Sequence record: MW384823.1
DNA: 64,000 bases
Direction: 5' to 3' (one strand)
This document shows, one piece after another, positions 5,915 through 29,353 of this stretch (the stretch's first letter is position 1; each line of letters begins with the position of its first letter). The notes under the pieces are model-generated. The model made no database searches, was not told the origin of the DNA, and saw only the letters and a program-made list of their open reading frames with translations. Both the position numbers and the translations under genes were made by a program.

Positions 5915-5920
5915 ACAAAA

Positions 5921-6805
5921 ATGGGTGTTAAAATCAGTTGGGATAGCCAAGCGGGTAAAGGGTTGGATGCGGTCGAAGTGTATCGTAGCAAAACCAAGAT
6001 TGACCCGCAGAATCCGGGTACGCCATTGGCGACGCTCGATCCGAGCCTGACGTCGTATGAAGATTTCACGGCGGTCAACAAAAACCTTTACTACTACTGT
6101 CTGGCAGCGAAGAAAGGGTCTGAACGGTCTTTTGGTACCAATCAGTTGACCGCGTATTTCTCGGAGACCGGGCCGGGTAACGCCACCCTTGCGCGGGGAA
6201 GTTGGAACGCAGGCTTTATGGATCGTGTGCCGAGTGCTTCGTTTATTACCGGAAACGACTTGGCCGCAAAACTGACGGGCCTGGTTTACACTGGTAACCC
6301 CGGACAACCGGCTAACTGGTTCAAGTTTGCGTACAAAGGGAAGATTCTGTTCTTCCCAGATGTCGCACTGTTCACCGCCTCGTGGAGCCGTTTCTACGAC
6401 GCAGGCATGGTGTTCGGTACCGATGATTTTGGGAAAACGCCGTCGGGGGTACCGGGTTCGGTTAACCAGAAACGTATCGTGGAAATCAACGGGTTGCAAT
6501 ACATCGCACGTTTGGCCAAGCTCTCTGACATCGACTTGGGTAAATACCTGACGGTGCAAGATGATACCATCGCCAGCGAATACCGTTCGACGTTAACCCG
6601 TATGCTGCGCGCGACGGTTGAAACACAAGCGGGTGCGTTACGTCGTTTCGGTGACATGACGTCGTTACCACTCATGTTGGGCCAACATCTATATTCGGCA
6701 ACACAGGCAGCGTTTGCGCAAGCGGCAGCACCGGCGACGTTAGGCGTGACGGCTATTACCACCGCCGTATCCACTGCCATTGTGCTTGAGCTGATCATGC
6801 CATAA
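5921..6805 (+). CDS. virion/tail-associated protein, type C paralog 2
   Basis: 294 aa; MGVKISWDSQAGKGL; WFKFAYKGKILFFP; ends LELIMP. Confidence 0.7.
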   Translation: MGVKISWDSQAGKGLDAVEVYRSKTKIDPQNPGTPLATLDPSLTSYEDFTAVNKNLYYYCLAAKKGSERSFGTNQLTAYFSETGPGNATLARGSWNAGFMDRVPSASFITGNDLAAKLTGLVYTGNPGQPANWFKFAYKGKILFFPDVALFTASWSRFYDAGMVFGTDDFGKTPSGVPGSVNQKRIVEINGLQYIARLAKLSDIDLGKYLTVQDDTIASEYRSTLTRMLRATVETQAGALRRFGDMTSLPLMLGQHLYSATQAAFAQAAAPATLGVTAITTAVSTAIVLELIMP

Positions 6806-10810: not shown

Positions 10811-11341
10811 ATGGCCATCATCACTCCACAGGCGCAACTGGTTGCCCTGTTCAATGCGAAAAACGCAAGTCTGCCGCAAGCACTGGTTGTTGCTGACGTC
10901 ACTTTCGGTGCCGTTGCTGCATACGTACCAGGCGACGGTAGCGATACCCGTAACACCAAACTGACCATCACCGCGGTGGCGGATAACGCCCACTTCACCG
11001 GTGCGAAAGAGCTGCACTACACCCGTCTGAGTTCCGGCATTGTTGGTCCGAAAGCAGTTACCGCTGCACAGGCTGACTGGGACACCGACGAAGAAGTGCT
11101 GGCGAAGCTGAATGCTGACGTGATCACGGCCGGTAAAGCCAACGATGAGTTTGCCCTGTCCGACCTGACCATTACCCGTACCGACGGCGAAGATGGTGCG
11201 AAGGTAATTGATATCAGCATCAACGCTGGCCACATCAAATACCTGCCGGGTCAGGTGGCGACGTACGCCGTCACTGAAGAGATTCAGAAAACCGACCTTA
11301 GCACCACTGATGGCGAACTTGACGGCTTCACCGCTGCTTAA
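10811..11341 (+). CDS. virion protein (type A N-domain only, plus DGELxxF tail)
   Basis: 176 aa; RNTKLTIT...FTG...YTR; ends DGELDGFTAA; GAGG SD. Confidence 0.65.
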   Translation: MAIITPQAQLVALFNAKNASLPQALVVADVTFGAVAAYVPGDGSDTRNTKLTITAVADNAHFTGAKELHYTRLSSGIVGPKAVTAAQADWDTDEEVLAKLNADVITAGKANDEFALSDLTITRTDGEDGAKVIDISINAGHIKYLPGQVATYAVTEEIQKTDLSTTDGELDGFTAA

Positions 11342-11403: not shown

Positions 11404-11419
11404 TCTTCAAGGAGTGCAC

Positions 11420-11920
11420 ATGGCTAAGACATTGCAAGAAGAGTTCATCGACATGGTGAACGCCAAAAACGCAGGTTTAGGTTTAACGTTAGCGGACGTG
11501 GATTTCAGCGACCCAAGCGATTATGTCCCCGGCGAGGAAGGTGGTACACGTAACAGTGTACTGACGCTAACAGCAAAAGCAACTAGCGCGACGTTCAAAG
11601 GCAGCAAAGCGTACCATTTCAACCGTTTCAACTTTACCCATCCAAACGGGGAAGATGAAGTATCGGTGATGATGAGTGACCTCGACCTGTACTGGCAAGA
11701 GGATGATTATGTTCTGGCACAGTTTAACAAAGCCTTGCCTAACCATCCGGTTACCATGTCAGAGGTCACCATTACCCGTACCACAGTAGATGGGCATCTG
11801 CGTGTGAAGATAAAAATCGTTCCGACGCACTTGAAATGGCAAGGGGCGTATGTGTTTGAAATCTATGACGGTAAAACGTTACTGGATAACCGGGACGGTG
11901 AGTTAGACGGGTTTAATTAA
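11420..11920 (+). CDS. virion protein, paralog of 10811..11341
   Basis: RNSVLTLT...FKG...FNR; ends DGELDGFN; AAGGAG SD favours ATG at 11420. Confidence 0.65.
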   Translation: MAKTLQEEFIDMVNAKNAGLGLTLADVDFSDPSDYVPGEEGGTRNSVLTLTAKATSATFKGSKAYHFNRFNFTHPNGEDEVSVMMSDLDLYWQEDDYVLAQFNKALPNHPVTMSEVTITRTTVDGHLRVKIKIVPTHLKWQGAYVFEIYDGKTLLDNRDGELDGFN

Positions 11921-11985: not shown

Positions 11986-12696
11986 TCAGGCGTTTAACAG
12001 TGGAATCTGCGTAATCGGCTGACTTAACGGCTGCGGCTGCCATGTGAGCGTTACAGCGTTAAATGCACGCTTGATATTCCGGTAACGCGCATTGACACAC
12101 ACCGCGTGCTTTACATCCCAACGTTCGTGCTCGGGAATCGCGTTTTCAATCTGTTCACGGAAGAACAGGTAGTTGCGATTGTAGTTCAGCGTGACATCCG
12201 ATATCGACGGATAACTGTATACATGCGGGTCATCGTTCTTATCGGCATAAGACGGCCAGCCGAAGTTCTTCACCGCTTCGTAGAACGAGTTGGCAAGGAA
12301 GGAATCGACCTTCATCATTTCCATAATCCGCAAGAACATCAAGTCCGCAAACGGCTTATCCGTTGCCCGCGACAGATTGCCTGCCGGGGTATCCGGGTAC
12401 GGAACCGGCGACGGGGCTTTCTGATACAGCAGGTCGTGGATGCACGCGGCGGCGGCCCATGGGCCATCAGGATGCAGAATAGGCTGCAAGGCGGCCGGGA
12501 TACTTGCCAAGTCTGTCACGAACCCCGCGGGAGCGGTAACATACATCAGCGTATCGGGATGGATACCCGACCGGTGTACCATGTCATCCAATCCGACGTG
12601 GTCACGGTACAGTGCGCGTAACGTGAACGGTACCCGAAAGTCTTCTGTCAGAATGAACCACTGCTTGTCCAGCACTTTATACTTCAACTCGTTCAT
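11986..12696 (-). CDS. DUF1353-domain protein
   Basis: PAGFVTDLASIP, AAACIHDLLY and ADLMF motifs typical of DUF1353. Confidence 0.8.
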   Translation of the reverse strand: MNELKYKVLDKQWFILTEDFRVPFTLRALYRDHVGLDDMVHRSGIHPDTLMYVTAPAGFVTDLASIPAALQPILHPDGPWAAAACIHDLLYQKAPSPVPYPDTPAGNLSRATDKPFADLMFLRIMEMMKVDSFLANSFYEAVKNFGWPSYADKNDDPHVYSYPSISDVTLNYNRNYLFFREQIENAIPEHERWDVKHAVCVNARYRNIKRAFNAVTLTWQPQPLSQPITQIPLLNA

Positions 12697-12809
12697 GAAA
12701 GCGCCACCTTAACCATACTGAGCACCACCATGCCTATAATCGACCCCCACAGCACATACGCAGGTGGATCATCCTCGGTAAAGAATTTTGTCGGTACAGA
12801 TTTGTTCAT
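12693..12809 (-). CDS. 38-aa single-TM peptide (not in ORF track)
   Basis: MNKSVPTKFFTEDDPPAYVLWGSIIGMVVLSMVKVALS; fills the intergenic gap; ATGA overlap with the DUF1353 start. Confidence 0.5.
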   Translation of the reverse strand: MNKSVPTKFFTEDDPPAYVLWGSIIGMVVLSMVKVALS

Positions 12810-12828: not shown

Positions 12829-13428
12829 TTATTTAGAACATACGCCTACCTTGATAGCGTAGTCGCCCATTTCACGGTAGACGCGGTCATACCAACCGTA
12901 AGTGAACTCTTCGTTCTGCACACGCTTCTCGGAAATCTCGGTGTAGTACGACACCTGATGCGAGGTCAGTGCGAACATCAGACGGTTGAAGCCATCCAGA
13001 CCACGGGCTTTCAGGAAGCCTTCCAGTGCAGTCATGGTGGCCGGGCCGATACCGCCATCAGCATCGATGTCGGCGTACAGTTTACCCTGACGGTTCAGGA
13101 CGTTCAGGATGCGCTGGAGAGACTTGATGCAGTTAGCACGACCGGCGTTGATACCGAAGTCGAACATACGGTCAGCCAAGAGCGGATTCCATGCGAGAAT
13201 ACGGTCAAGGCGCATACGGTCCCACCATCCTTTCTTGTAGATGTCAAGAGCCATCTGACGCGTCAGGTTACGCATGTCACCGGTGTACCCGTTTTCACGC
13301 GCGGTTGCTTGAGTGATGCCGAAGTTGGTTGGGCCACCCAAATCGTTTGGGTTGTTAACATAACCGGCTTCAATGTTAACTTTGGCCGCGATGATACCTT
13401 CCATACTCCAACGGTCTACAGCTGTCAT
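12829..13428 (-). CDS. endolysin, glycoside hydrolase family 108 with C-terminal peptidoglycan-binding domain
   Basis: EAGYVNNPNDLGGPTNFGIT, FDFGINAG, LQRILN...DGGIGPAT, F.YGW; start MTAVD after GAGG SD. Confidence 0.9.
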   Translation of the reverse strand: MTAVDRWSMEGIIAAKVNIEAGYVNNPNDLGGPTNFGITQATARENGYTGDMRNLTRQMALDIYKKGWWDRMRLDRILAWNPLLADRMFDFGINAGRANCIKSLQRILNVLNRQGKLYADIDADGGIGPATMTALEGFLKARGLDGFNRLMFALTSHQVSYYTEISEKRVQNEEFTYGWYDRVYREMGDYAIKVGVCSK

Positions 13429-13471
13429 AACGTTTCCTCTAATAAAGAACAACAGTCATAACAACCGTAAG

Positions 13472-13512
13472 AAAAAAAGAAAAGCGACCCACCCCCGAAG
13501 GAGTGGGTACGG
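13472..13512 (-). terminator. intrinsic terminator closing the radical SAM operon
   Basis: ACCCACTCC-ttcg-GGGGTGGGT plus T run on the minus strand, immediately after the 13514 stop. Confidence 0.75.
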
Positions 13513-13513
13513 C

Positions 13514-14170
13514 TTAGGCTACACCATTATCCGCAGCAAGCTGCTTGATTGCAGTGAAGTCTTTTTGTTCCGTGAGGATACGGATGCGTTGTTTCAGCAC
13601 GGACATGACCATGTGCAGGTCGTTGTCACGCGCGATGATTTCCGCATAGAGGGCTTTGACGTCCTCCACCGTCCACGGCTCGATAGGCTCGTTGTTCAGC
13701 GTCATCCAGTACATCGGGTCAACCCCGGACTGCATGTAGCTTTGCATCGAAGCGCGCGATTTCTCGTCGGCTTGGAACGTCTTGTCACGGAAGGTAATCG
13801 GTGCAAACCGTTCCGCGTTATACTTGTCGTTCAGCTTCGGATAAATCGCATTGACTTCCTGATAGAGATAGTTTTCCGTCGAGGTCAGCGCGGTACGTAC
13901 TTGGTCTAAATCAATCTCCAGCACGTTCGCGATGAAGTCTTTGGTCTTCTTCATCAGGAATTCAATTTCGACCGGAGACAGGTCGAAGCCTTTGAGTTTC
14001 TCGCGGGCTTTCTTGTCGCTCATACCGTTAATCAGATGGTAGTGCAGCAGCAGGCAGAACCCAATGCGGTTTTCCATCTGGTCTTGGTATTCTTCCACGT
14101 AGTTACCGTAGCGGTCGATACGTGTGCCCCGTTCGAAATAGCGGGCTTTTATTTCGTCGTTACTAAGCAT
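13514..14170 (-). CDS. DUF4376-like protein (family associated with tail-fibre genes)
   Basis: C-terminal ITFRDKTFQADEKSR...YWMTLNNE...VKALYAEI resembles DUF4376. Confidence 0.6.
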   Translation of the reverse strand: MLSNDEIKARYFERGTRIDRYGNYVEEYQDQMENRIGFCLLLHYHLINGMSDKKAREKLKGFDLSPVEIEFLMKKTKDFIANVLEIDLDQVRTALTSTENYLYQEVNAIYPKLNDKYNAERFAPITFRDKTFQADEKSRASMQSYMQSGVDPMYWMTLNNEPIEPWTVEDVKALYAEIIARDNDLHMVMSVLKQRIRILTEQKDFTAIKQLAADNGVA

Positions 14171-14706
14171 CCGGATTCTCCTGCAATCCCAAGGTCAACC
14201 AGCAGACCGAAGTCAATGAACTGGAAATCATTTTCCAACTCTTCACCCCAGAGCAGTTTGGCCTCTTCTGCTTCGTCACCCATCTCTTCCAGCGTCTTAC
14301 GTGCCACTTCGAACTCGTGGTAGAACGCATCGGTCAGGTGGGTACCGCGCAGAGCACGGATGGTCACACCAGGGAAGTTCAGGGCCAGTCCCACGACGTT
14401 AGTTGGGTCGGCATCACCGGTAGACCGGCGCAGCACCTGCAACTTGTGTTTCGGGAACGCCACCACACGTTCTTCGAAACCGGGATTACGCTTCTCGATT
14501 TCGACAACAGACTGGTGGTCATCTTCCACGCCCTGTAAAGGCAGGATGACGTTCAGGCCATAACGGTTCAACAGACGAATGGTGTCATCGTTGAAATCTT
14601 CACCCGGCACGATCGCATGGATGTTGTACAGCTTGTGTTTGCGAAGAAACGCATCAACAAGGTGAACGTTACGCCGAGTAAAATTGTGAATCAGCAATGA
14701 CTTCAT
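14149..14706 (-). CDS. hypothetical protein in the radical SAM operon
   Basis: 185 aa; overlaps both neighbours. Confidence 0.65.
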   Translation of the reverse strand: MKSLLIHNFTRRNVHLVDAFLRKHKLYNIHAIVPGEDFNDDTIRLLNRYGLNVILPLQGVEDDHQSVVEIEKRNPGFEERVVAFPKHKLQVLRRSTGDADPTNVVGLALNFPGVTIRALRGTHLTDAFYHEFEVARKTLEEMGDEAEEAKLLWGEELENDFQFIDFGLLVDLGIAGESGCLVTTK

Positions 14707-16015
14707 TCGAGGCTCCGAGTTCTAATTTAAGTTTGTCTGCCTGCATACGTTCACGTACACAGCTCGCACAGTAGCACATGGACTTATCGTGCAGGTCTGC
14801 GACATTCGTGGTACCGGTTTTCTGATACCAGTATTCGGACACCAACAGTTTCGCGGTCGTCCAACCACACTGGCGACGCTCAGCGTGGTACTCTTTACGC
14901 GCTTCCAGCTCACCGTCACCGTTCTCGTAAGACGCGGCCGCACAGCTACCGCACGAGTGTTTCATCGGGCAGCCTAAGCAGGTAGACGGGTAGTTGGTGT
15001 ACTGCGTCTGGATTTCGTTCAGGAGCTTGTGACCGTCAATGTTCACAATCTCACGGCCACGCAGTTCTGCTACAGCCGAACGGGTGGTCACGGTTGACAT
15101 GAAGCGGTTACAGCCGTAAATCTTACGGTCGAAGCCGAGACAGGTCATGTGGGTCAGCGTACCGCAGTAAGGACGTACGCGGTCTGGGTGCAGACGGGTT
15201 GCTTCATCGTCCAGCAACTTCTGACGCCAGTCCGGGTCCCATGTCGCCATGAAGTCCAGCCCATCAGGAATGATGTGGGTCAGGATGTTACGCGGGGACT
15301 TGTGGTAGCCGTTGTCGACCCAGTAATCGATAACGTCCATCATCTGGTTCGCAATGCCCAGAGACATATCACGCGTCAGGATATCTTCATACGTGACGTT
15401 ACCGGAGATGGTACCACCGCCTGTTTCTTTAATCAGGTGAATCATGCTCTCGCCGTAACGAGGCAGGGTCTCACCAGTAAAGGTGGCTTTGATACCGAGT
15501 TCTGCAATACCGACAGATTTCAGGTATTGGTAGCCGCGCATCGCTTGCTCGTACGAGCCTTCACGCGAGGTGGTGAAGATACGATAGCGGTCGTGCACTT
15601 CTGGCAGACCATCGATGGACACACCAATCGACAGACGGTCTTTCCAGCGTTCAATGATTTCTTTGCTGATGGGACGGTCGAACAAGGTGCCGTTGGTAGA
15701 AATAGAGAATACGTACTGACGGTTGTCGCGCGCCGCTAATTCTTCCGCTGTCTCAAAGACGGCTTTCAGAATCTTCGGCTGCATAAACGGCTCACCCCCG
15801 ATGATGTCGATAATGATTTCGGCATCTTCGATGTGACGGTCGCGGTCAAAACACGCATGAATAAAATCGACAGCGTCATCCACTTTGTTGTTACGCGGAT
15901 ATTTACGCTCGTAGCAATACGAACAGTCGAGATTACAAGACAGGTTAGTTACCACCTGATACGTGAGTGTGGGGCGCTGTTTACGCGTCTGCGATGTAGA
16001 TCGTTCTTCGCTCAT
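14669..16015 (-). CDS. radical SAM/SPASM-domain peptide maturase
   Basis: CNLDCSYC (CxxxCxxC), GGEP, STNG, SIDG; C-terminal C...GC...CLGCPMKHSCGSC...C SPASM-like Cys set. Confidence 0.9.
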   Translation of the reverse strand: MSEERSTSQTRKQRPTLTYQVVTNLSCNLDCSYCYERKYPRNNKVDDAVDFIHACFDRDRHIEDAEIIIDIIGGEPFMQPKILKAVFETAEELAARDNRQYVFSISTNGTLFDRPISKEIIERWKDRLSIGVSIDGLPEVHDRYRIFTTSREGSYEQAMRGYQYLKSVGIAELGIKATFTGETLPRYGESMIHLIKETGGGTISGNVTYEDILTRDMSLGIANQMMDVIDYWVDNGYHKSPRNILTHIIPDGLDFMATWDPDWRQKLLDDEATRLHPDRVRPYCGTLTHMTCLGFDRKIYGCNRFMSTVTTRSAVAELRGREIVNIDGHKLLNEIQTQYTNYPSTCLGCPMKHSCGSCAAASYENGDGELEARKEYHAERRQCGWTTAKLLVSEYWYQKTGTTNVADLHDKSMCYCASCVRERMQADKLKLELGASNEVIADSQFYSA

Positions 16016-16905
16016 TTGATTACCTCATTGCGATGTTTGCGAGCGTGGATCGTGCGATTGATGTAACGGTAGGCGTCTTGCCCAATGACTTTCGCCAGCA
16101 TGTTACAGCCGCTATCGATTTCCATCTCGACATCCATCGTGTAGCCGATAGACGCATCGGAGTCCAGACGAACCAGACCGCTGCACGCGTTGCACGACTG
16201 CTCAAAGAACTTGCTGATGGAGAACCCGGTTGAGCCATTGTTCATGACATTCAAGCGTTCAATCTGGTCTTCCATCTTGTTGTAACCGAACATGAAGTTC
16301 ATCACCAAATCTTGGTTCAGAGGTTTCTTCATGCGGTTGTCCAACAGCAGCGTCATGTCTTTGAAGCCGTAGTGGTAGAGTGCGCGGTGTAAGTCCAGCA
16401 GGTCAGTGTGCCAATATTTATCAGCCAACTGCTCACGAGTCACCACGGCCCACGTATGGACGTTGTTCAGCGCAGCCATCACTTCGAAGGCTTCGAATGC
16501 GCCATCTTCAACGACACGCCAGAGCGGACGTTCGCTCTTTTTGTATCCATCGAACGACACACAGATACGGTTAAACTGTTGCAGCATCGGGAGGTGCTCC
16601 AGACGCATTTTCAGGCCGTTCGTGTACAGCTCGTGAGTGAGATGCGGATAACGGGCTTTGACTTCGGCCAGCAACGGCTCAATCTTACGGGTTGCCATCA
16701 ACGGCTCACCGCCCGTCCAGTTCATCCCTTGTAAAGTCGGGTACTTCTCCAGTTGTTCAAACAGCGCTTCACGCTGAATTTCCCGACCAACATCTTTTGT
16801 GTCCATGTAATACGCTCCGCCGCAGAAACTACAATCCAAATTACACTTGGACGTCGTCACTATCGACAGCTCGGTAGGGGGACGTATTTGTGGTGCATCG
16901 GTCAT
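16012..16905 (-). CDS. second radical SAM enzyme with short C-terminus
   Basis: CNLDCSFC, TGGEP, YTNG, SFDG; only CNAC...C downstream; 4-nt overlap with the next gene. Confidence 0.85.
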   Translation of the reverse strand: MTDAPQIRPPTELSIVTTSKCNLDCSFCGGAYYMDTKDVGREIQREALFEQLEKYPTLQGMNWTGGEPLMATRKIEPLLAEVKARYPHLTHELYTNGLKMRLEHLPMLQQFNRICVSFDGYKKSERPLWRVVEDGAFEAFEVMAALNNVHTWAVVTREQLADKYWHTDLLDLHRALYHYGFKDMTLLLDNRMKKPLNQDLVMNFMFGYNKMEDQIERLNVMNNGSTGFSISKFFEQSCNACSGLVRLDSDASIGYTMDVEMEIDSGCNMLAKVIGQDAYRYINRTIHARKHRNEVIK

Positions 16906-16923
16906 TGCAGATTGCTCCAGTTT

Positions 16924-17802
16924 TTAATAGATCGCGAAAAGGGGATCGTCCTCAAACTTCGCGCCCACATCCAGCAAGAAGTCGGAGTGGTAGGCTTCGA
17001 GAATCTGATTCAGAATCGCATGACGGTCGTTAACCCGCTTGAGGTCATCGAGGGTCACGATTCGCGACTTGATGTTTGAAACTGCCTTTTCTTCGTCAGC
17101 TGTCAGGGAAACCTTCGTCATAAGGAAACTTACCAGCTTGCTCAGGTCAGCCTCGGTGCCCGGCGCTTCACCGTAACGCCACTGAACCAAGAACTGCATC
17201 CACGGTTTGCGGATACGGCGACTGATTTCGTGTGGGTCGGTAATCGCTTCGAACTGCTCATCTACCGCATTCCAGCGGAACTTGTAGCTGTAGGCCAGCA
17301 AGTCAGCCAGACAATGGATACCGAGCGTTTCATAACCTACGATGTGGTGGTATTTTTCCACACCTTTATACTCTTCGGTGCCGGTTGGTACTAAGGTGTA
17401 CCAGAACGGATTGGAAGACGGATAGTCCCAGCTCCATTCGCGACGAACCATGGGAATGACGTCCAAATCCGCAAACGGCGTGAAGATCATTTCCAAATCC
17501 ATCGAGTGGTTCAGGACTGCATCAGTAAAGAAATACTTACCGTCAATCAGTCGGCCACTGGAGTTCAGCTCGCTTTCATTAAACTTCACATGCTGAACGG
17601 TGTGCTTACCGATGGAGTAGGTATTCTCTTCGGTGTACTGCTTACGAACAATGTCCCGCCCACGTACCTTAGGCCATTCGCCTGGCAGCATCGAGATAAG
17701 GCGTACTTCGTCCGCGATGTGTGCTTTCACACTGTCGTACGACGAAATGTGTAACGGGAAATTTTGCGTCGTGCGGTACGCCAAATGGAGGTCGTTCTTC
17801 AT
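16924..17802 (-). CDS. hypothetical protein between precursor peptides and radical SAM genes
   Basis: 292 aa open frame, colinear with the operon. Confidence 0.75.
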   Translation of the reverse strand: MKNDLHLAYRTTQNFPLHISSYDSVKAHIADEVRLISMLPGEWPKVRGRDIVRKQYTEENTYSIGKHTVQHVKFNESELNSSGRLIDGKYFFTDAVLNHSMDLEMIFTPFADLDVIPMVRREWSWDYPSSNPFWYTLVPTGTEEYKGVEKYHHIVGYETLGIHCLADLLAYSYKFRWNAVDEQFEAITDPHEISRRIRKPWMQFLVQWRYGEAPGTEADLSKLVSFLMTKVSLTADEEKAVSNIKSRIVTLDDLKRVNDRHAILNQILEAYHSDFLLDVGAKFEDDPLFAIY

Positions 17803-17820
17803 GGTTTCTTTATCCTTACT

Positions 17821-18030
17821 TTATCGGTTACCCGCGCCGTAACTGCACCCACCACTGCACGACCAGCTACAGCTACCGTTGCAGTTATAATGCGAGAGTG
17901 GAAGCCCAGCAAGGTTGTTGGTCGAACTGACCGTGCCGCGTGTGGCGATATAGTTATTGGCCTGTGCGGTCGTGATGTAGCCCTCGACGTTCTGCACCCG
18001 ATCGCGAATGTTTTTCAATGAGATTGCCAT
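17821..18030 (-). CDS. putative RiPP precursor 3 (short core, 4 Cys)
   Basis: 49-aa leader MAISLKNIRDRV..VE; core CNGSCSWSCSGGCSYGAGNR; GAGG SD. Confidence 0.8.
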   Translation of the reverse strand: MAISLKNIRDRVQNVEGYITTAQANNYIATRGTVSSTNNLAGLPLSHYNCNGSCSWSCSGGCSYGAGNR

Positions 18031-18051
18031 AGGTCCTCACTCGATAGATTT

Positions 18052-18444
18052 CTATCGACTGCCTGAACAGCCAGAGCATCCCGTACAACTTGAACTACAG
18101 GAACCGGAACAGTTACCGGAGCATGTACCCGAACAACCGGAGCACCCGCCCGAACACGAACCAGAACATCCTGAGCACCCACTGGTACACCCAGCAGTAC
18201 AGCTCGACGAACAAGAGGAACCGCAGCCCCCTGATGCCGAACCGGAACAGCCACCTGAACAGCTAGAACAACCCCAGCTACAGGTTCCGCCGCAATCGTA
18301 ATGAACACGTCCTTGGCCGCCGAATAAGTCGACGTTATTGGTTGCCTTGCCACGAATGTAGGTTTGAACCCCACCTTCCGTTTTTAAGGCGTTCGCTTCG
18401 ATCACCGCAATGCGATCCGCGAGGTTTCGTAAGTTGATAGCCAT
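18052..18444 (-). CDS. putative RiPP precursor 2 (Cxxx/Cxx-repeat core, 20 Cys)
   Basis: 50-aa leader MAINLRNLADRI..IE; 80-aa C/S/G/T core; GGAG SD. Confidence 0.85.
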   Translation of the reverse strand: MAINLRNLADRIAVIEANALKTEGGVQTYIRGKATNNVDLFGGQGRVHYDCGGTCSWGCSSCSGGCSGSASGGCGSSCSSSCTAGCTSGCSGCSGSCSGGCSGCSGTCSGNCSGSCSSSCTGCSGCSGSR

Positions 18445-18453
18445 TGTTGCTCC

Positions 18454-18843
18454 CTACTGTGGACCAGAGCACGCAGAACAACCGGTGCAGCTAGAAGAAC
18501 ATGACCCAGCGCAACCGCCGCCACACTTACCGCTGCACGATGACGCACAGGTACCTGAGCAACCCGAACAACCCGAACACCCACCACCGCAGTTAGAAGA
18601 ACAGCTACCCACGCACGTAGAAGTACAGGTTCCTGCGCAGCTGGTACAGCTTGCAGAACACCCGTTAGAACACGACCAGCTACAACTGCCGCCACAATCC
18701 AGACGGGAGGGAGACCACCCACTGAACGAGTCCGCAGCGTTGTAAGCTTTCGATGCTACCTGCCCATCTACACGAGGCCCGGTAGCATAGTTTGCTTCCA
18801 CATTGTTAACGCGGTCGCGTATGTTTTTCATTGAAATCGCCAT
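18454..18843 (-). CDS. putative RiPP precursor 1 (Cxxx/Cxx-repeat core, 21 Cys)
   Basis: 49-aa leader MAISMKNIRDRV..VE; 80-aa Cys-periodic core; AAGG SD. Confidence 0.85.
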   Translation of the reverse strand: MAISMKNIRDRVNNVEANYATGPRVDGQVASKAYNAADSFSGWSPSRLDCGGSCSWSCSNGCSASCTSCAGTCTSTCVGSCSSNCGGGCSGCSGCSGTCASSCSGKCGGGCAGSCSSSCTGCSACSGPQ

Positions 18844-18860: not shown

Positions 18861-18898
18861 AAAAAAATGAGGACGCTGCCATAATGACAGCACCTCAT
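18861..18898 (-). terminator. imperfect intrinsic terminator upstream of the precursor genes
   Basis: ATGAGGtGCTGTC-attat-GGCAGCgtCCTCAT plus T run on the minus strand. Confidence 0.55.
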
Positions 18899-18908
18899 GT
18901 AATAAGTG

Positions 18909-20108
18909 TTATCGTGAACCCGCTTCGGCCTGTACGTCGTCGCGAGAAGTCAGGCTGCTATTGACGTGTACCGCCGCCTGAACCACACCACCGTACTGCT
19001 TGTGGAGATAGTTCGGGTGTGGGTTGTCCGCGTTAACGTGGTTCTGGAGATTCTGCGACAGGGTGTTGATGGAGTTCTGCAACCCAGCAACTTGCTGTTT
19101 CAGTGCATTAAGCTGACCAGAGAGATCCTGAATCTGCTGCTGCGTATCGGAACCGGCGGATTCCAAATCACTGATGCGCTGCTTGAGCCCATTGATGACT
19201 TGGTTCTGGTCATTGACCATCTTCTGGAGTTGCAACACCAGAGAGTTGAGGTCAGCCTGTTGTAAGGCCGCCTTCTGGTAGTTCAACGCCACCGAGTTCA
19301 GTTGGTCGTTCCACGAACCGAGCGCACTGACCACAGCATCGATGCGCGCGCCGAGTGCGGTGTCTGCGGCTTTCAGATTACCAATGTCGGCTAAGACCGC
19401 GTTAATCGCCGTTTGCACCGTTTGAATCAACGCACGGATTTCGGTTTCCGTCAGACCGTTTGCCTGATGGATGTCCAGCGCATGGACGTTACCTTTGGCA
19501 TCGATGTGCGATTGCAGAGCCGCCATCATCTGGGTTTGCATGTCAGACATGGCTGCCAGAATCTGTTGGAGCTGCACTTCGTTACCGGAGTTAATCGCGT
19601 CAGTCATCAGCGCCAGTTGCGTGATGATGTATTCGAAACCGAACAGGTCACCGAGGTCTTTAAATGCCGGAGCAGACGCAAAGGTATCCGGGACATTACG
19701 CAAATCCGCGAAGTCAACTTTACGGTCTTCAAGGTTGGCATCAGCCAACGCCTGTTTAATCGCAGAGATAACCGCCGATTGTGGGCCACCAACCGCCTGT
19801 GCAAGACAGACGATATCGGTTGGGATAGCCGGGTTAGTGACGACCACACCCATACAGATTTCGCGGTTCTTCGCAAGCTTCATGTACGCCGGATGGATGT
19901 AAATCAGCTCGTAGTCGGTACCGCGTTTATAAATGGTGTTGGGTTGATTGGCAGGCCGCATACGGAACGTGTCCGCAAAGAACGGCCCTGCTGGGAAAGC
20001 AAACGCACGGTTGACCTTCCCCCCACCTAACACAACCGGGACATTGACCGCGTTACTGGACGCAGCCCCTGTCAGGTCAAGTGGGTATTGAAATAGAATA
20101 TCTGGCAT
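18909..20108 (-). CDS. short tail-fibre-like virion protein with long coiled coil
   Basis: N-domain (GPFF...RGTDYE) shared with the three giant proteins; heptad-rich C-half; HVNADNPH motif. Confidence 0.6.
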   Translation of the reverse strand: MPDILFQYPLDLTGAASSNAVNVPVVLGGGKVNRAFAFPAGPFFADTFRMRPANQPNTIYKRGTDYELIYIHPAYMKLAKNREICMGVVVTNPAIPTDIVCLAQAVGGPQSAVISAIKQALADANLEDRKVDFADLRNVPDTFASAPAFKDLGDLFGFEYIITQLALMTDAINSGNEVQLQQILAAMSDMQTQMMAALQSHIDAKGNVHALDIHQANGLTETEIRALIQTVQTAINAVLADIGNLKAADTALGARIDAVVSALGSWNDQLNSVALNYQKAALQQADLNSLVLQLQKMVNDQNQVINGLKQRISDLESAGSDTQQQIQDLSGQLNALKQQVAGLQNSINTLSQNLQNHVNADNPHPNYLHKQYGGVVQAAVHVNSSLTSRDDVQAEAGSR

Positions 20109-20155
20109 GGCCAAACTCCCTTAGTGAGACGTCCTTGTCTCGACGTGTTAGATGG

Positions 20156-23100
20156 TTACGGCAACTTAGGCATAAGATTGACCGTCAGTTTCGATGGGGT
20201 GACCGTTCCACCGTAATAGTTGACCCCGTTGCCGATGTACAACGCGTTATCCGCAATCATCACCGGTATCGGTTGACGGAAGACGACATCCCCATGAACA
20301 ATCGGGAAGTAGTCATCGATTGAAACCCCCGCGGGCATCGCAACCTTATAGACGTCCAACACCCCACCGGTAATACGGGCAGTGGAACTGTCCACGTTTG
20401 TTGCTGCACGAATCGCCACAGTGGCAGCGTCGGAAGTGTAGAACACCGACGATGAGCCGTTGTCCACGTTTGCGATGCTGAACGCGGCGAAAGCCGAGGC
20501 TTGCCCGCCAGTAATGCCGCTAAACACAAACGTGTTCTTGACCCCCACATCTGCGGACAGGGTAATCTCGGACAATGCAGACGCGAAAGTACCAGAAACC
20601 GCAAGGTTGGCGTTAGTACACACGATGGTACCCGCGCCCAAGGTATAACCCGGTTTGAGTTTGATTTTCACCGTCGGGGTCGATGGGGTGACCTCAACAA
20701 TCATTCTCCACGCAATCGAGTTAATGGCTGACATCCCCGGAATACCCACAGAATACGCATTGTCCACATCCGAAGCCTGACTAACGTTGGCCCCTTTCAT
20801 CGTAAACTTTTTGTAGTCTTTAGGTAAGCTGGAGGTAAGCGCATCGCGTAGCAGCTCGATAGGCACCTTGTGGGTTCGTGCGGCAAAGATACCGCCGATT
20901 TGCGCGACATCCAAGTAGCCATCCCCGGTAGCCGCAGGTGCAGCAAGCGGCTGTTTGCGGAGCAGCCCCAGACGGGACAGGCGCGCTTCACTGTCCACGT
21001 TCACATCGTGACTGTAAACGATTTCAGCGTGCTCAGTCAGTTGTTTCAATTCACCCAGACGTTTCACTTTCGTGAACTCCGATGAAAGGATTCGCTGACT
21101 GTCGGTAACCACCGTCCCGATAAACAACCGACTATTGGTGTCTGGCATTTTCTGCGTCAACAGCTGGTATTCCGGTTTGCCGTTCACCACCGCCGCGTGC
21201 ATGTAGAACGTCCGGTTCTGATACGCACCGGGGAACAACGTCTTGAGGTTCTGGTTGTAGGCATCCAACGTGTAATAGTCGGAACCAAACCGTAAGCTCT
21301 CAGACTCGGTGATGTACAGCTCCCAGCCTTCTGCCGTTTTCACCCCAGCCACAATCTCATACGGCCGTGCAGTCGGTACCCAACCCGGCACGTTTGCGAT
21401 GTAGTCCTCAGGAGGCGCTGCCGGACCTGCAAGGTAGGCAGGCGAGACGTAGCTTTGGTTCGTGCGAGCAAGTTTATTACCGACAATTGCCAACTGGGTT
21501 GGGTTGTAGTAATACGCTGAACTCAGCATCGTTGCACCGTTGTTGACGAGCTTCGACCCGTTTAAGGTGAACTTCATCTCAAAGTGCTTTGACCCCGCAC
21601 CCCCAACCACGTTGTACTGATACACGTTCGGCAAGTGCAGGAAACCTGTGCCGTCCCCTTTCTCGTAAAAGATAGGTTGTGTGTAACGCTGGGTGTGGTA
21701 ATGGTAATACGTGATACTCATCGCCGTGATTGACGGTTCGGCAATGTTGACGCCGTACACCATGTCAACCGTGGTGATGGGGAACGTTACCGTTGAGCCT
21801 GTCACGGTAGGGTAAATCTGGAACAGGTAGTAGTCGACGAAACGGCTACTGTTGCGGTCACTCTTCACCGCCACTTGCACCAACCAAATCGGCTTGGCAT
21901 CTTTCGGACGAATCGCCCACACAGAGAACTGAGGGTCAGCTCCTGCATTGATATATTCGTTCGCGTAAGCGTTAGCCGAACCCGACGGTGCTTGTGACTT
22001 GATGGTGCTTAGGAGCGTGTTCCAGTCACTCTGGCTAATTGTCAGGACGTCAGCAGTTGGGCTGTCACCCACGGCTTGGTAGTTCTGACTGCCGGGTGCT
22101 GTCCAGTAGGCACCTTGCGGTTTCCCGTTTTGCAGACTACCGGATGCACACCACGTCATGTTCCCCAGCTTGTAATACTTCGCGAGGTCAAACGCACGCC
22201 GCACGTTGGACGGGCCTAAGCCGCCAAAGTCCGGTGAGTAACGGGTGTCCGGGTCAGTCTCAACATACACCGCACTGGCCTCAGTAATTGGTGCCAGCAG
22301 GTATGCGTTGTTGCCGAGGTATACCGCGCCACTGTAACCCACTTTCAGTACCGACCCCACCCCGCCATTGAACACCCACGCATCTACCTGATTCATGCCG
22401 TAGTTAGAATGGGCTTCCAGATGGTCAAACAACGAACGGCTATTATCCCCTAACACACAACGGCTAATCCCGGTCTGGTTCGCCGCGTCACCGGGGTCAA
22501 AGTACGTCCAGAAATACGGGCTATTGTCAATCGGATAAACGTGGGTACGGTTGTTGGCAAAACCATACGCCCATTTCGCTTGATAGCCTTTGGTGCGCAT
22601 TTCTTCGCCGGTAGCCAGATATACCCCGTCGACATCAATCTTCAGCGGGAAGATCTCAGGGTTCTCAAGCGTAACCGCGAACGCATCCATGTCCACCACG
22701 AACGATGTCGGCCACACGGTAAATGGATACGACCCATCAGCATTCGCCAGATAAATCGTACCGTTTACACCGACGCGCAACGTCGCGTTTTTCAGGGCAA
22801 CACCGGCATGGGTTTGTGGGCCATGCGCAATGTTACGCGTTTGCCACTTCGCCAAGCCCGCCGCCGTTACCGTTGACAGACCGTTCGGCACAACAGTTGT
22901 CGAGCCGGGGTCAATCGGTTGACGCAAGTTAACGAAGACGCCTTGGCGACTGGTACCGCCAGTCAGCGCCACAGACGCGAACACTATTCCCCCGTTGGCG
23001 TTTACCGTACCGACCAACATAAAGGTGCGGTAATAGTTGTTAGTGACTTCCATGCGTAGGATATACACGCGGTCTTTGTAGACCACAACATGATCCGTCA

Positions 23101-25177
23101 ACTGGTTCGGTGAATAGTTAAACGTAGAGCCAGAACCGGGTAAATCGGTTGGGAAGGTCGTCTGCCAAACACGCAGGTGTTTCTTCTGGTTAAGCGTCCC
23201 GTCAAACATGATGGTGTAGTATTTGTTGTCTGTCCCCAAACAGACCATCGCGTCTTCACCACACACGACGATTGCCACCAGTTTCACACCGGGGAACGCA
23301 CTCATGCCCGCCGGTTGATAAACGTAGGAGGTTTGCTGGCGTTTAACCATCAGTCCCGCCGTGTCAATCTGAGCATACGAGTAATAGATGTAGTCCGTAT
23401 TCGGTAAGCCGTCGTTGGCGTTCCGTAAGGCATACACCGTGTCCGCTTCCTGCTTAATCACCCCTAAAGACTGTGGTTGATTAAACCGTTTGGCAAAACC
23501 TGCGTAGTTACCCACAGCCGGGATGGGCAGATAGCCGGGGTTACCGTAAGCAGCACCACCGGTCGTCCACGACGGCATCAGGCCATCCAGCACCCCTTTG
23601 TACTCGTTCAGACGCTGCTGTACATTGTAGCCCTGCTTTGACGTCACCACCTTATTCGTGGTGTTATCAATTGCATCCCACAGCTGCAACAGACCCGCGT
23701 CTGTATCGGACGCCGTGGGCACGCCAGTCAGGTCAGCGAAAGTGTGCGTGTGGTTTGCCAGTGACTTGTTTGCCAGCACTGCACGGATCGCATTGGTCAG
23801 TGGTTTCTCAGCAGGGGCGGTGTTGTTGATGTTACCCACACCCAAATCGGTTGCCGTCAGGGTCAGTGACTGCTTTGTGCCGTCATCAATAAACTTCTTC
23901 CCGTTGATGGTGTACGTGTTGTCCACGTAATCATCCAGCGTCTTTTTCAGGACGTTAACAGCGTACTGGGAAATCGCAGTACCGGAAGAAATATTTGCAG
24001 ACAGGTTGGTAATGGCAAACAGACCCGGCACTTTGTCAGTGGCGGTCGGGAGTTGCGCATTCATGGTCAGGGGAGACGACTGCTTCGCCGTACCGAACAC
24101 CTTGATGGTGTCGGTGGGCGAAAAATACGCATTGCCCGGCAACAGTTTTACTTCGGACAGGTACAGCGATACCATATCCGGTGTGACCAAGTATGCCCCG
24201 TTAAAGATAGGTGCCACGGCACCGTTGAGTACATACGCGGTGTTCAGGCCGGAACCCAACTCCACACCCACGCCCCGTTCGTTGCTGTCTGCATCGGCAG
24301 TGATGTTAATAGCACGGGTAGTGGTAATAAGGAACTTGTCACCTTGCAGGGTGATGACGTGACTGGAGTCGGCGGTACGGAACGTCAGGGCACCGTTGTT
24401 CAGCACCTTGAGGCGACCACGCAGTTCGCCGAGTACCACCGGCATCAGGGTATCGATGTGGGTTTGCTGAATACCGTTCGCTTTCATGATAGCGACTAAC
24501 TCGTCCAGCGTCTTACCGAACGCCTTCGTTGAGTCAATTGCCTTGGTCAATACCTTTAATGCCCCAATCTCATCTGCCGTGTATTGGTGTGCGTTCTTGA
24601 TGCGGTGGTGGCTGTACAGGTTGTCATCAAAAATCTTTTTACCGTTGGCGAAAATCAAATCGGTGACTTCGGTGTACGCCGCATCCATTTCCCCTGCACG
24701 CTTAATCAGACCCTGGCGAATGTCATCCAGTGCTTTGACCACTTCGTCACGGAGCAGGGCTTCGTCCAGGTTAGCAGGTGGGTCAATTGCAGGAATCACC
24801 GGCGCATAACGCATCAGTTCAGACCAATCGGTGTTACGCGGGTCTTTGATGTCCTCTTTTACTAAGAACTTACCAATCTCGGTTTGTGGCACGCGATATT
24901 CACGGCCAACGGAATAGATTGTGTAGTCAACGGAGGTGTCCCCGTTAATCAACATAATCCCGCCGTAGATTTGGTCTTTCATTGCGACAGCGGCTTCTTT
25001 GTAATAGTAGCCGAGGTAGTAATCCAGACCCTCAATGAGCTTTACGCCTGCGCTGTTTTTCAGCTCAAGCCCGGTACGGAAGAACGGCCCCTCAGGAGGG
25101 ATGACCACATTGTATTTGTTCGGATACGTGGTCGTCAGTAGCGTACCGGTAAATTTGGCTACGTTCGTGCTCGCCAT
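20156..25177 (-). CDS. giant tail-fibre-like virion protein (1673 aa)
   Basis: Shared GPFF N-domain; G+.N+.NT...KP...HTH module; Gly/Thr/aromatic beta-rich body. Confidence 0.7.
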   Translation of the reverse strand: MASTNVAKFTGTLLTTTYPNKYNVVIPPEGPFFRTGLELKNSAGVKLIEGLDYYLGYYYKEAAVAMKDQIYGGIMLINGDTSVDYTIYSVGREYRVPQTEIGKFLVKEDIKDPRNTDWSELMRYAPVIPAIDPPANLDEALLRDEVVKALDDIRQGLIKRAGEMDAAYTEVTDLIFANGKKIFDDNLYSHHRIKNAHQYTADEIGALKVLTKAIDSTKAFGKTLDELVAIMKANGIQQTHIDTLMPVVLGELRGRLKVLNNGALTFRTADSSHVITLQGDKFLITTTRAINITADADSNERGVGVELGSGLNTAYVLNGAVAPIFNGAYLVTPDMVSLYLSEVKLLPGNAYFSPTDTIKVFGTAKQSSPLTMNAQLPTATDKVPGLFAITNLSANISSGTAISQYAVNVLKKTLDDYVDNTYTINGKKFIDDGTKQSLTLTATDLGVGNINNTAPAEKPLTNAIRAVLANKSLANHTHTFADLTGVPTASDTDAGLLQLWDAIDNTTNKVVTSKQGYNVQQRLNEYKGVLDGLMPSWTTGGAAYGNPGYLPIPAVGNYAGFAKRFNQPQSLGVIKQEADTVYALRNANDGLPNTDYIYYSYAQIDTAGLMVKRQQTSYVYQPAGMSAFPGVKLVAIVVCGEDAMVCLGTDNKYYTIMFDGTLNQKKHLRVWQTTFPTDLPGSGSTFNYSPNQLTDHVVVYKDRVYILRMEVTNNYYRTFMLVGTVNANGGIVFASVALTGGTSRQGVFVNLRQPIDPGSTTVVPNGLSTVTAAGLAKWQTRNIAHGPQTHAGVALKNATLRVGVNGTIYLANADGSYPFTVWPTSFVVDMDAFAVTLENPEIFPLKIDVDGVYLATGEEMRTKGYQAKWAYGFANNRTHVYPIDNSPYFWTYFDPGDAANQTGISRCVLGDNSRSLFDHLEAHSNYGMNQVDAWVFNGGVGSVLKVGYSGAVYLGNNAYLLAPITEASAVYVETDPDTRYSPDFGGLGPSNVRRAFDLAKYYKLGNMTWCASGSLQNGKPQGAYWTAPGSQNYQAVGDSPTADVLTISQSDWNTLLSTIKSQAPSGSANAYANEYINAGADPQFSVWAIRPKDAKPIWLVQVAVKSDRNSSRFVDYYLFQIYPTVTGSTVTFPITTVDMVYGVNIAEPSITAMSITYYHYHTQRYTQPIFYEKGDGTGFLHLPNVYQYNVVGGAGSKHFEMKFTLNGSKLVNNGATMLSSAYYYNPTQLAIVGNKLARTNQSYVSPAYLAGPAAPPEDYIANVPGWVPTARPYEIVAGVKTAEGWELYITESESLRFGSDYYTLDAYNQNLKTLFPGAYQNRTFYMHAAVVNGKPEYQLLTQKMPDTNSRLFIGTVVTDSQRILSSEFTKVKRLGELKQLTEHAEIVYSHDVNVDSEARLSRLGLLRKQPLAAPAATGDGYLDVAQIGGIFAARTHKVPIELLRDALTSSLPKDYKKFTMKGANVSQASDVDNAYSVGIPGMSAINSIAWRMIVEVTPSTPTVKIKLKPGYTLGAGTIVCTNANLAVSGTFASALSEITLSADVGVKNTFVFSGITGGQASAFAAFSIANVDNGSSSVFYTSDAATVAIRAATNVDSSTARITGGVLDVYKVAMPAGVSIDDYFPIVHGDVVFRQPIPVMIADNALYIGNGVNYYGGTVTPSKLTVNLMPKLP

Positions 25178-25201
25178 GAAAAAACACTCCTACGTATTGA
25201 T

Positions 25202-25230
25202 AAAAGGTTACCGCCCTTTCGGGCGGTAGC
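25202..25230 (-). terminator. intrinsic terminator
   Basis: TACCGCCC-gaaa-GGGCGGTA then ccTTTT on the minus strand. Confidence 0.6.
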
Positions 25231-25263
25231 TTGCGGGTAACACGCCCGCAAGCGTGTACCCCT

Positions 25264-29343: not shown

Positions 29344-29353
29344 TTGCTTCTCC

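Follow-up and report, generated by a model that had tools for sequence, protein, structure and literature searches.

The 64,000-nucleotide stretch of DNA analysed here (the window) is part of the genome of Erwinia phage pEa_SNUABM_43 (MW384823, 100% identity), a Machinavirus of 241,904 bp, with window position 13400 corresponding to record position 137400. On its minus strand, from 18843 down to 13514, eight co-linear open reading frames (ORFs) code for three cysteine-repeat proteins (P1, P2 and P3), a 292-aa accessory protein, a 297-aa and a 448-aa radical S-adenosylmethionine (SAM) enzyme, a 185-aa protein and a DUF4376 protein. We propose, with a probability of about one half, that this block is a radical SAM maturation module for cysteine-repeat proteins of the tail-fibre tip. 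The components of this reading carry different weight. P1–P3 are very probably the substrates of the radical SAM enzymes, a relationship that is well supported because of co-occurrence and enzyme type. Homology and position incline us towards a place for P1–P3 at the fibre tip of the virion; we also lean, if not strongly, towards thioether formation on these proteins, which is the likeliest chemistry because the nearest characterised relatives of the large enzyme all make thioethers.

The original prediction, made from the letters of the window without database searches, had described the block as a phage-encoded operon resembling those for RiPPs (ribosomally synthesised peptides that carry post-translational modifications), with three leader-bearing cysteine-repeat precursors and two radical SAM enzymes. 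All eight genes were found where it had placed them; the nature of the supposed precursors is what our data change.

Coding Status and Conservation of P1–P3

P1 begins with a 49-residue N-terminal segment, after which come 80 residues of Cys/Ser/Gly ladder; this ladder contains 21 Cys, most of them in CXXX spacing. P2 contains 20 Cys and bears the junction motif N-N-V-D-L-F-G-G-Q-x-x-x-H-Y-D-C-G-G-T-C-S-W. The spacing counts of P1 and P2 are 13–15 CXXX and 5 CXX, so that both show the trait of the TIGR04115 family, a CXXX-repeat target next to a maturase. The cores of the P1/P2 type are composed of 30% Ser, 27% Gly and 25% Cys, with C-S-G-[S/G/T/N] as the unit; the eight cores examined contain no Asp or Glu at all and at most one Lys or Arg. 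In the whole window, P1 and P2 are the only proteins with at least eight closely spaced Cys in a chain. P3 has a truncated ladder with only 4 Cys, or 2 in phages CR5 and Wellington, and the prediction of three cysteine-repeat precursors thus holds in the sense of three real genes of one family, with P3 as a Cys-poor member.

We compared the region with that of phage pEa_SNUABM_6, to which it is 89.5% identical, and counted substitutions by position 1/2/3 of the minus-frame codons. The counts were 7/2/39 for P1, 2/0/36 for P2 and 3/1/27 for P3, a pattern that matches that of the neighbouring enzyme genes. This third-position bias indicates that P1, P2 and P3 are real coding genes under purifying selection. 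The trio is kept in the same order in Machina, pEa_SNUABM_6, SPN3US, CR5, Wellington and three metagenomic jumbo-phage contigs, and across these eight relatives the number of Cys is nearly constant (21 in P1, 20–23 in P2, 4 or 2 in P3). The only PHROG family matched by P1–P3 is phrog_6085. Pfam and NCBIfam gave nothing useful for the three proteins; the sole hit, TIGR04118 on P3 (E = 0.09), was treated as noise.

It should be noted that these genes are treated unevenly in deposited genomes. In the GenBank record MW384823, P1 and P2 are unannotated and plus-strand ORFs are annotated over both; we rejected these ORFs on the codon-position evidence. In SPN3US (locus L003 of our own numbering, 4949–5978), gp166 is a wrong-frame call over P2, and P1 and P3 are unannotated. 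Wellington gp183 (L091, 3627–4672) is likewise a wrong-frame call. In the annotation of Machina, all three cysteine-repeat genes are correct.

Cysteine Repeats in Tail Fibres of Prophages and Viral Contigs

The 448-aa enzyme was searched against 5.8 billion proteins. Sequence identity falls in a step, from at least 49% for the orthologues in jumbo phages to 31–39% for relatives on bacterial chromosomes and viral contigs, and every one of the latter loci that was examined lies in a tail module. In Campylobacter pinnipediorum, the order is gpW, gpJ, gpI, a 384-aa protein, a 250-aa protein, the SPASM radical SAM enzyme, the small radical SAM enzyme, DUF1353, sheath and tube. The 384-aa protein matches Pfam Phage_tail_fib, its residues 1–314 match tail-fibre PHROGs (E = 1e-55), and its final 40 residues are a CSG-type Cys repeat. 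In Deferribacter abyssi, a 302-aa protein encoded 3' of a GpJ-like gene contains H-x-H-D-x-R-Y-Y-T-E repeats and closes with N-A-D-Q-L-G-G-Q-A-G-S-Y-Y-R-C-S-D-C-S-W and a CXXX-repeat stretch of some 90 residues; its gene is followed by those for a 250-aa protein, the small radical SAM enzyme and the SPASM enzyme. Two lambda-like viral contigs (L013 and L015) have a Cys repeat that terminates a 250–300-aa protein 3' of a GpJ-like gene, and in a P2-like contig (L016) the repeat terminates a 401-aa protein encoded between baseplate and sheath genes, the N-terminus of which matches phrog_3904 (E = 2e-9).

The C-termini of these prophage and contig fibre proteins match the same family as P1–P3, phrog_6085 (E = 4e-12, 7e-6 and 4e-12), and the matches begin at profile positions 17–30, that is, inside the supposed leader. 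Direct alignment reveals a junction common to P1–P3 and the prophage fibres, N-A-x-x-L-x-G-Q-x-x-x-Y-Y-x-C-x-G-x-C-S-W-x-C-S. The N-terminal ~50 residues of P1–P3 are therefore homologous to the last shaft segment of the prophage tail fibres, and since the repeat in the prophages is the C-terminus of a protein with an established fibre N-terminus, this domain is hard to see as a disposable leader. In view of the homology, a role of the N-terminal segment in docking or assembly is more likely than that of a cleaved leader. In addition, Pfam, NCBIfam and PHROG searches found no peptidase, exporter or transporter, or immunity gene among the eight genes or their neighbours. The claim that P1–P3 are RiPP-type precursors with leaders consequently fares badly, and the part of the original prediction most favoured by the new evidence is that the product is linked to the virion rather than a classical secreted bacteriocin.

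Overall, a four-gene core can be recognised, made up of a Cys-repeat fibre end, the accessory protein (250–290 aa), the small radical SAM enzyme and the SPASM radical SAM enzyme. It is kept in jumbo myoviruses, P2-like elements and lambda-like siphoviruses alike, and it always occupies the fibre slot: in the window, the block lies directly 3' of four virion/tail paralogues, and its relatives follow gpJ/gpI or GpJ. The jumbo phage (11986–12696) and the Campylobacter P2-like element (L007, 8068–8433) each have a DUF1353 gene close to the two radical SAM genes.

Co-Occurrence of Radical SAM Enzymes and Cysteine-Repeat Proteins

Scanning IMG/VR with the enzyme alignment gave 80 viral loci, in which we looked for an ORF on the same strand, within 6 kb, with at least eight closely spaced Cys in a chain. 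Such a neighbour was present at 71 of the 80 loci, as against 3 of 80 in the opposite-strand control, and the 71 loci represent about 21 of the 27 enzyme clusters at 50% identity. Radical SAM enzymes routinely occurring without the peptides, the observation named beforehand as capable of overturning the prediction, were not seen among these 80 loci. What stands of the predicted cross-linked or otherwise modified peptides is a set of peptide- or protein-modifying radical SAM enzymes with Cys-repeat targets; what does not is their description as leader-and-core precursors.

The shortest Cys-repeat proteins of these loci have about 115 aa and the longest more than 1,400 aa, and in ten diverse ones Pfam mostly found no match. 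The SPASM enzyme and the accessory protein of the window each occur in 62–63 deposited phage records, which with a single exception belong to SPN3US-like jumbo phages. The viral enzymes also include true members of TIGR04115 (586 bits at L017, 521 at L048 and 379 at L030), and the L017 module comes after baseplate-wedge and tail genes.

Several other repeat classes were observed among the viral loci. At L060, L061, L064, L069, L077, L083 and L086, the proteins are 650 to more than 1,400 aa long with long C-E/Q-x-x repeats and up to ~150 Cys, and the adjoining SPASM enzymes score best against PapB. Large viral contigs (L048–L059, L062 and L063) carry Cys-repeat proteins of 821–834 aa; the one tested, from L048, contains the ALK/LTK glycine-rich domain PF12810 (E = 2e-96) and adjoins the true TIGR04115 enzyme. 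The repeat class C-T-C-N-C-N-Y(F) lies beside three radical-SAM-like genes at L075, L081, L084, L087 and L088, with four tandem paralogues at L084. At L075, L081 and L088, the C-T-C-N-C-N-Y repeat is directly followed by a Peptidase_S74 intramolecular chaperone domain, a domain typical of fibres and spikes.

Properties of the Two Radical SAM Enzymes

Both enzymes match Pfam Radical_SAM (E = 4e-11 and 4e-15), as had been predicted. The 448-aa enzyme has the CX3CX2C motif at residues 27–34 (C27, C31, C34), and in an alignment of 25 relatives these three Cys are invariant together with C284, C302, C346, C349, C355, C358 and C383. The SPASM assignment of the original prediction finds no match in Pfam SPASM for either enzyme and is upheld for the large one by the invariant Cys and by the alignment with CteB: the motif and some seven conserved C-terminal Cys, as needed for two auxiliary clusters, are present, and the seven invariant Cys fit a full SPASM domain. 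With the 25-relative profile, CteB (5wgg, E = 2e-36) came out as the best solved relative, and anSME as the next. The profile covers CteB residues 104–431, the SPASM domain included, and leaves the N-terminal ~100 residues of CteB without a counterpart.

In NCBIfam, only peptide maturases are found among the top hits of the 448-aa enzyme. TIGR04115 comes first with 126.4 bits (E = 1.7e-36, cut-off 350), and PapB (NF047865) is a near-tied second with 125.4 bits (E = 2.8e-36, cut-off 340). The family named in the original prediction (around TIGR04114/TIGR04115) is thus indeed the nearest named one, tied with PapB, although the score stays far below its cut-off. Judged by these profiles, the enzyme is best described as a radical SAM/SPASM peptide maturase of a sister lineage to TIGR04115, not a member by score. 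A RiPP recognition element (RRE) was recognised neither in this enzyme by the alignment with CteB nor in the accessory protein by the model search.

The 297-aa enzyme has its CX3CX2C motif at residues 21–28 and two invariant C-terminal Cys (C241 and C267), and it is without a full SPASM domain. Its similarity is of the generic radical SAM kind, with weak matches to QueE, MoaA, NrdG and viperin models, far below the cut-offs. The annotated starts of its homologues SPN3US gp164 (L003, 6889–7050) and CR5_154 (L004, 6902–7040) fall 3' of the motif, which is intact and in frame upstream, so that the deposited proteins are N-terminally truncated.

Accessory, 185-aa and DUF4376 Proteins

In its C-terminal half, the 292-aa accessory protein shows homology to the proteins of 250 aa found together with the two enzymes in prophages (E = 6e-12 with the Deferribacter protein, which in turn matches that of Campylobacter with E = 5e-9). 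The family is tiny, with 42 representative clusters among 1.84 billion proteins. The AlphaFold model of the accessory protein is confident (pLDDT 88.9). In a Foldseek search with it, the best PDB match had E = 0.39 and the only BFVD match was its own orthologue; a PDB sequence search with the family profile gave no match, and Pfam and NCBIfam gave nothing useful for either this protein or the 185-aa protein. According to the model, the accessory protein has a new fold, to which neither an RRE nor a known chaperone fold can be assigned, and it may contain a novel recognition domain.

The model of the 185-aa protein (pLDDT 88.4) is an alpha/beta domain that resembles alpha/beta barrels, including the radical SAM cores of CteB (TMq 0.57, E = 0.05) and QueE, at a non-significant level. 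The predicted domain may be a degenerate relative of radical SAM proteins or merely a generic fold. There is no CX3CX2C motif, and profile–profile comparison with both enzyme families was insignificant (probability below 6%), for which reason its identification as a third, degenerate radical SAM protein was rejected.

The DUF4376 assignment was borne out at residues 113–202 with 41.9 bits (E = 1.5e-10, cut-off 25), and in PHROG the protein weakly matches tail-fibre proteins and tail proteins. Both this gene and that of the 185-aa protein are found in the jumbo clade only, outside the four-gene core.

Comparison with Known Systems

The nearest named family, TIGR04115 (radical SAM peptide maturase, CXXX-repeat target family), is a bioinformatically defined NCBIfam family whose members, like the window enzyme, are SPASM enzymes without an N-terminal RRE beside CXXX-repeat proteins; its true members in viral contigs likewise lie in the baseplate/tail-fibre region. 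The window enzyme differs from them not only in score but also in sequence (~25% identity), and it is accompanied by a second, small radical SAM enzyme and a 250–290-aa accessory protein. At L017, the one true TIGR04115 locus analysed in detail, no second radical-SAM-like ORF and no accessory homologue were found.

PapB, which makes freyrasin, and CteB, which acts on SCIFF, are the best-scoring characterised relatives. Their SPASM architecture is the same, and they act on a repetitive Cys core, in which they form multiple thioether rings. The window enzyme stays below the cut-off of both families (for CteB, 61 bits against 425), it lacks the N-terminal RRE of CteB, and the targets are fibre-related proteins instead of the 40–50-aa peptides of the ranthipeptides. 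Of the features of a classical sactipeptide or ranthipeptide cluster, neither an RRE-recognised leader nor the peptidase, exporter and immunity genes were found here.

The use of a Cys-repeat protein, rather than a short peptide, as substrate is shared with CrpC/CrpA of Methanococcus voltae, where a SPASM radical SAM enzyme puts ranthionine links on a Cys-repeat protein and the paralogous substrates have their N-terminal ~47 residues in common (Dieter et al. 2026, PMC13692751). That system is archaeal and cellular, without a virion link; CrpC has a predicted RRE, and CrpA has a 17-residue repeat with a C-X-X-Q/D motif (PMC13692751).

The four-part layout of repeat peptide, SPASM radical SAM enzyme, small radical SAM enzyme and accessory protein recalls the His-Xaa-Ser system (HxsA–D). 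The scores for HxsB (83.6 bits, cut-off 370) and HxsC (33.0 bits, cut-off 268) are too low for membership, the repeat there is H-X-S as against C-X-X-X here, and the accessory protein of the window has no NCBIfam hit. Fibre assembly aids such as Peptidase_S74 and DUF1353/Tfa-type proteins are similar in that dedicated genes right after the fibre gene mature its distal end, but they do so by folding or self-cleavage and not by radical chemistry.

The original prediction had stated that no characterised phage system of this design was known, and our full-text literature search for CXXX-repeat systems and for radical SAM enzymes with tail fibres agrees with it: no description of such a system was found. 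The chemistry would be of a known kind, in a role not described before.

Proposed Model and Alternative Explanations

According to the proposed maturation of Cys-repeat fibre tips, the eight genes would be expressed late, together with the tail genes. The accessory protein would hold the junction N-x-x-x-L-x-G-x-x-x-x-Y-x-C-x-G-x-C-S-W and feed the C-S-G-X ladder to the SPASM enzyme, which would install numerous thioether (sulfur-to-carbon) links within the chain, at most about one in each repeat. The acceptors would be Ser, Thr, Gly or Asn, unlike those of PapB, because the cores are without Asp and Glu. The small radical SAM enzyme would introduce a second type of modification or act on a subset of the sites. 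The product would be a rigid rod or knob at the end of the tail fibre, resistant to reduction and to proteases. In prophages, the ladder would be the C-terminus of the fibre itself, and in SPN3US-like jumbo phages it would be split into three separate chains. These would attach by their ~50-residue N-termini to the fibre proteins whose genes lie immediately upstream, and as the carrier the 399-aa coiled-coil protein suggests itself. That P1, P2 and P3 together form one (hetero)trimeric tip is speculation. We extend the model, tentatively, to many tailed phages, in which the fibre end may be a CXXX ladder stapled with thioethers by dedicated radical SAM enzymes, divided among three chains in SPN3US-like phages.

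Several observations weigh against this model. The PHROG search found no recognisable tail-fibre attachment or shaft domain in P1–P3, and the Campylobacter element, instead of a prophage, could be a tailocin. The 448-aa enzyme scores below the cut-off of every curated family, which makes the transfer of a chemistry insecure; the Asp/Glu acceptors of PapB (Cys-X3-Asp/Glu) are missing from the cores, so that the pattern of a PapB-type target is not present; and the role given to the second enzyme is a guess. We found no proteomic record of a modification of P1–P3 or of their presence in the virion. The published SPN3US studies consulted do not mention gp161–gp166 and give no proteomic information on them. 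The silence of the SPN3US papers on P1–P3 is weak evidence against the model: standard proteomics would miss these proteins, because P1 and P3 have no annotation there, the call over P2 (gp166) is in the wrong frame, and the cores are nearly without tryptic sites.

The most serious alternative is a classical RiPP system in which P1–P3 are precursors of leader and core that lose the leader after modification, and lysis liberates cross-linked peptides with an antimicrobial, signalling or anti-defence function. We consider it unlikely. The proteins are small (69–130 aa), and several paralogous precursors lie beside SPASM maturases, as in sactipeptide and ranthipeptide clusters; yet a leader peptidase, a transporter and an immunity gene were not found, and an RRE was detected neither in the enzymes nor in the accessory protein. 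A conserved N-terminal region followed by a more variable core would also suit a precursor, but the homologue of this "leader" lies inside fibres in which the Cys repeat ends a structural protein of 250–400 aa, and the number of Cys and the length of the core are nearly fixed across genera, unlike the typical fast-evolving cores of bacteriocins. The adjoining endolysin remains as a point in favour of release at lysis.

Somewhat less probable still is the view that the Cys ladders bind metal or iron-sulfur clusters as domains of a virion or assembly protein and that the radical SAM enzymes carry out a modification other than cross-linking, e.g., Cys or Ser oxidation to formylglycine, epimerisation or methylation. 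With 25% Cys, the cores do have a metallothionein-like composition, and the presence of two distinct enzymes points to more than a single reaction. The second-best solved relative, anSME, is a Cys/Ser-oxidising SPASM enzyme; the targets of its type, however, are a defined short motif and not a 20-fold repeat, and the best sequence relatives (CteB, PapB and TIGR04115) form thioethers. It is very improbable that the enzymes and the Cys-repeat proteins are unrelated neighbours and that the former act on a nucleotide, cofactor or sugar. The QueE, MoaA, NrdG and viperin matches of the small enzyme that would point this way are all weak and far below the cut-offs, and the idea conflicts with the co-occurrence in 71/80 loci and about 21/27 enzyme lineages, with the gene order kept in both myovirus and siphovirus contexts, and with the exclusively peptide-maturase top hits of the large enzyme. 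Finally, the chance that the Cys-repeat ORFs are accidental frames in a GC-rich repeat, and that the plus-strand ORFs annotated in MW384823 over P1 and P2 are the real genes, is in our view negligible: low-complexity repeats do open in several frames, but the codon-position pattern of the minus frame, the N-termini and Cys register conserved across genera, and the match to phrog_6085 (E = 1e-48) all contradict it.

Genomic Context

The features of the region are listed in Table 1. In gene order, the eight genes are separated by gaps of 9, 21, 18 and 18 nt and then overlap by 4, 38 and 22 nt. The block was confirmed to lie between tail genes and the endolysin, with four paralogous virion/tail genes (18909–33034) on one side and the endolysin gene (12829–13452) on the other. 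The two terminator-like hairpins said to bracket it were also found, at 18894–18872 and 13508–13487. Such sites are only about twice as common here as in shuffled sequence (11 per 7.6 kb against 6.2 ± 3.0), and the two hairpins by themselves are therefore weak evidence, supportive at best.

Table 1. Features of the eight-gene block and its surroundings (positions in the window).
Feature	Position	Strand	Remarks
Three large paralogous virion/tail proteins, 1673, 1359 and 1226 aa	20156–33034	-	SPN3US gp168 homologue is a tail protein
Virion structural protein, 399–401 aa, coiled coil	18909–20114	-	SPN3US gp167 family, phrog_2163; first of four paralogues
Hairpin, terminator-like, with T run	18872–18894	-	3' end of upstream virion-protein gene, ahead of P1
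P1, 129 aa	18454–18843	-	phrog_6085, E = 1.5e-48; codon-position bias
P2, 130 aa, paralogue of P1	18052–18444	-	phrog_6085; junction motif; codon-position bias
P3, 69 aa	17821–18030	-	N-terminal segment and junction motif as in P1/P2; codon-position bias
Accessory protein, 292 aa	16924–17802	-	SPN3US gp165 family, phrog_8030
Small radical SAM enzyme, 297 aa	16012–16905	-	Pfam Radical_SAM, CX3CX2C
Radical SAM/SPASM enzyme, 448 aa	14669–16015	-	Pfam Radical_SAM, CX3CX2C, seven conserved C-terminal Cys
185-aa protein	14149–14706	-	phrog_7988
DUF4376 protein, 218 aa	13514–14170	-	Pfam DUF4376
Hairpin, terminator-like, with T run	13487–13508	-	closes the eight-gene block
Endolysin	12829–13452	-	GH108 and PG_binding_3
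38-aa ORF, C-terminal half mostly hydrophobic	12693–12809	-	between endolysin and DUF1353 gene
DUF1353 protein	11986–12696	-	phrog_1158, "tail assembly chaperone"

The four virion proteins encoded at 18909–33034 (399, 1673, 1359 and 1226 aa) have a common N-terminal domain (phrog_2163, phrog_7557, phrog_8078 and phrog_7449); the family corresponds to SPN3US gp167–gp170 and resembles phiKZ gp131. On the other side of the block, the 38-aa ORF at 12693–12809 keeps its position in Machina and Wellington and may be a component of the lysis cassette. Two adjoining plus-strand genes, at 10811–11341 and 11414–11920, both match DUF7941 and form a tandem pair of paralogues between tail genes and the DUF1353 gene.

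Conclusions

The substrate genes of this system have been overlooked because they are missing or mis-framed in most reference annotations. The proposed model makes concrete predictions for model phages with existing genetics and proteomics, e.g., SPN3US, and thioether-stapled Cys/Ser/Gly rods would be of interest for peptide and protein engineering. In Aeromonas phage 332-Vera, eight radical SAM genes within the structural/tail-fibre cluster were called "highly unusual" and left unexplained (PMC12390700); this cluster may show the same theme in enlarged form. If the model is true, radical SAM cross-links in a receptor-facing fibre would be a new post-translational chemistry for virion assembly, RiPP chemistry would be used as virion building material, and both the uncharacterised family of CXXX-repeat maturases and the unusual radical SAM genes of phages would gain a biological role.

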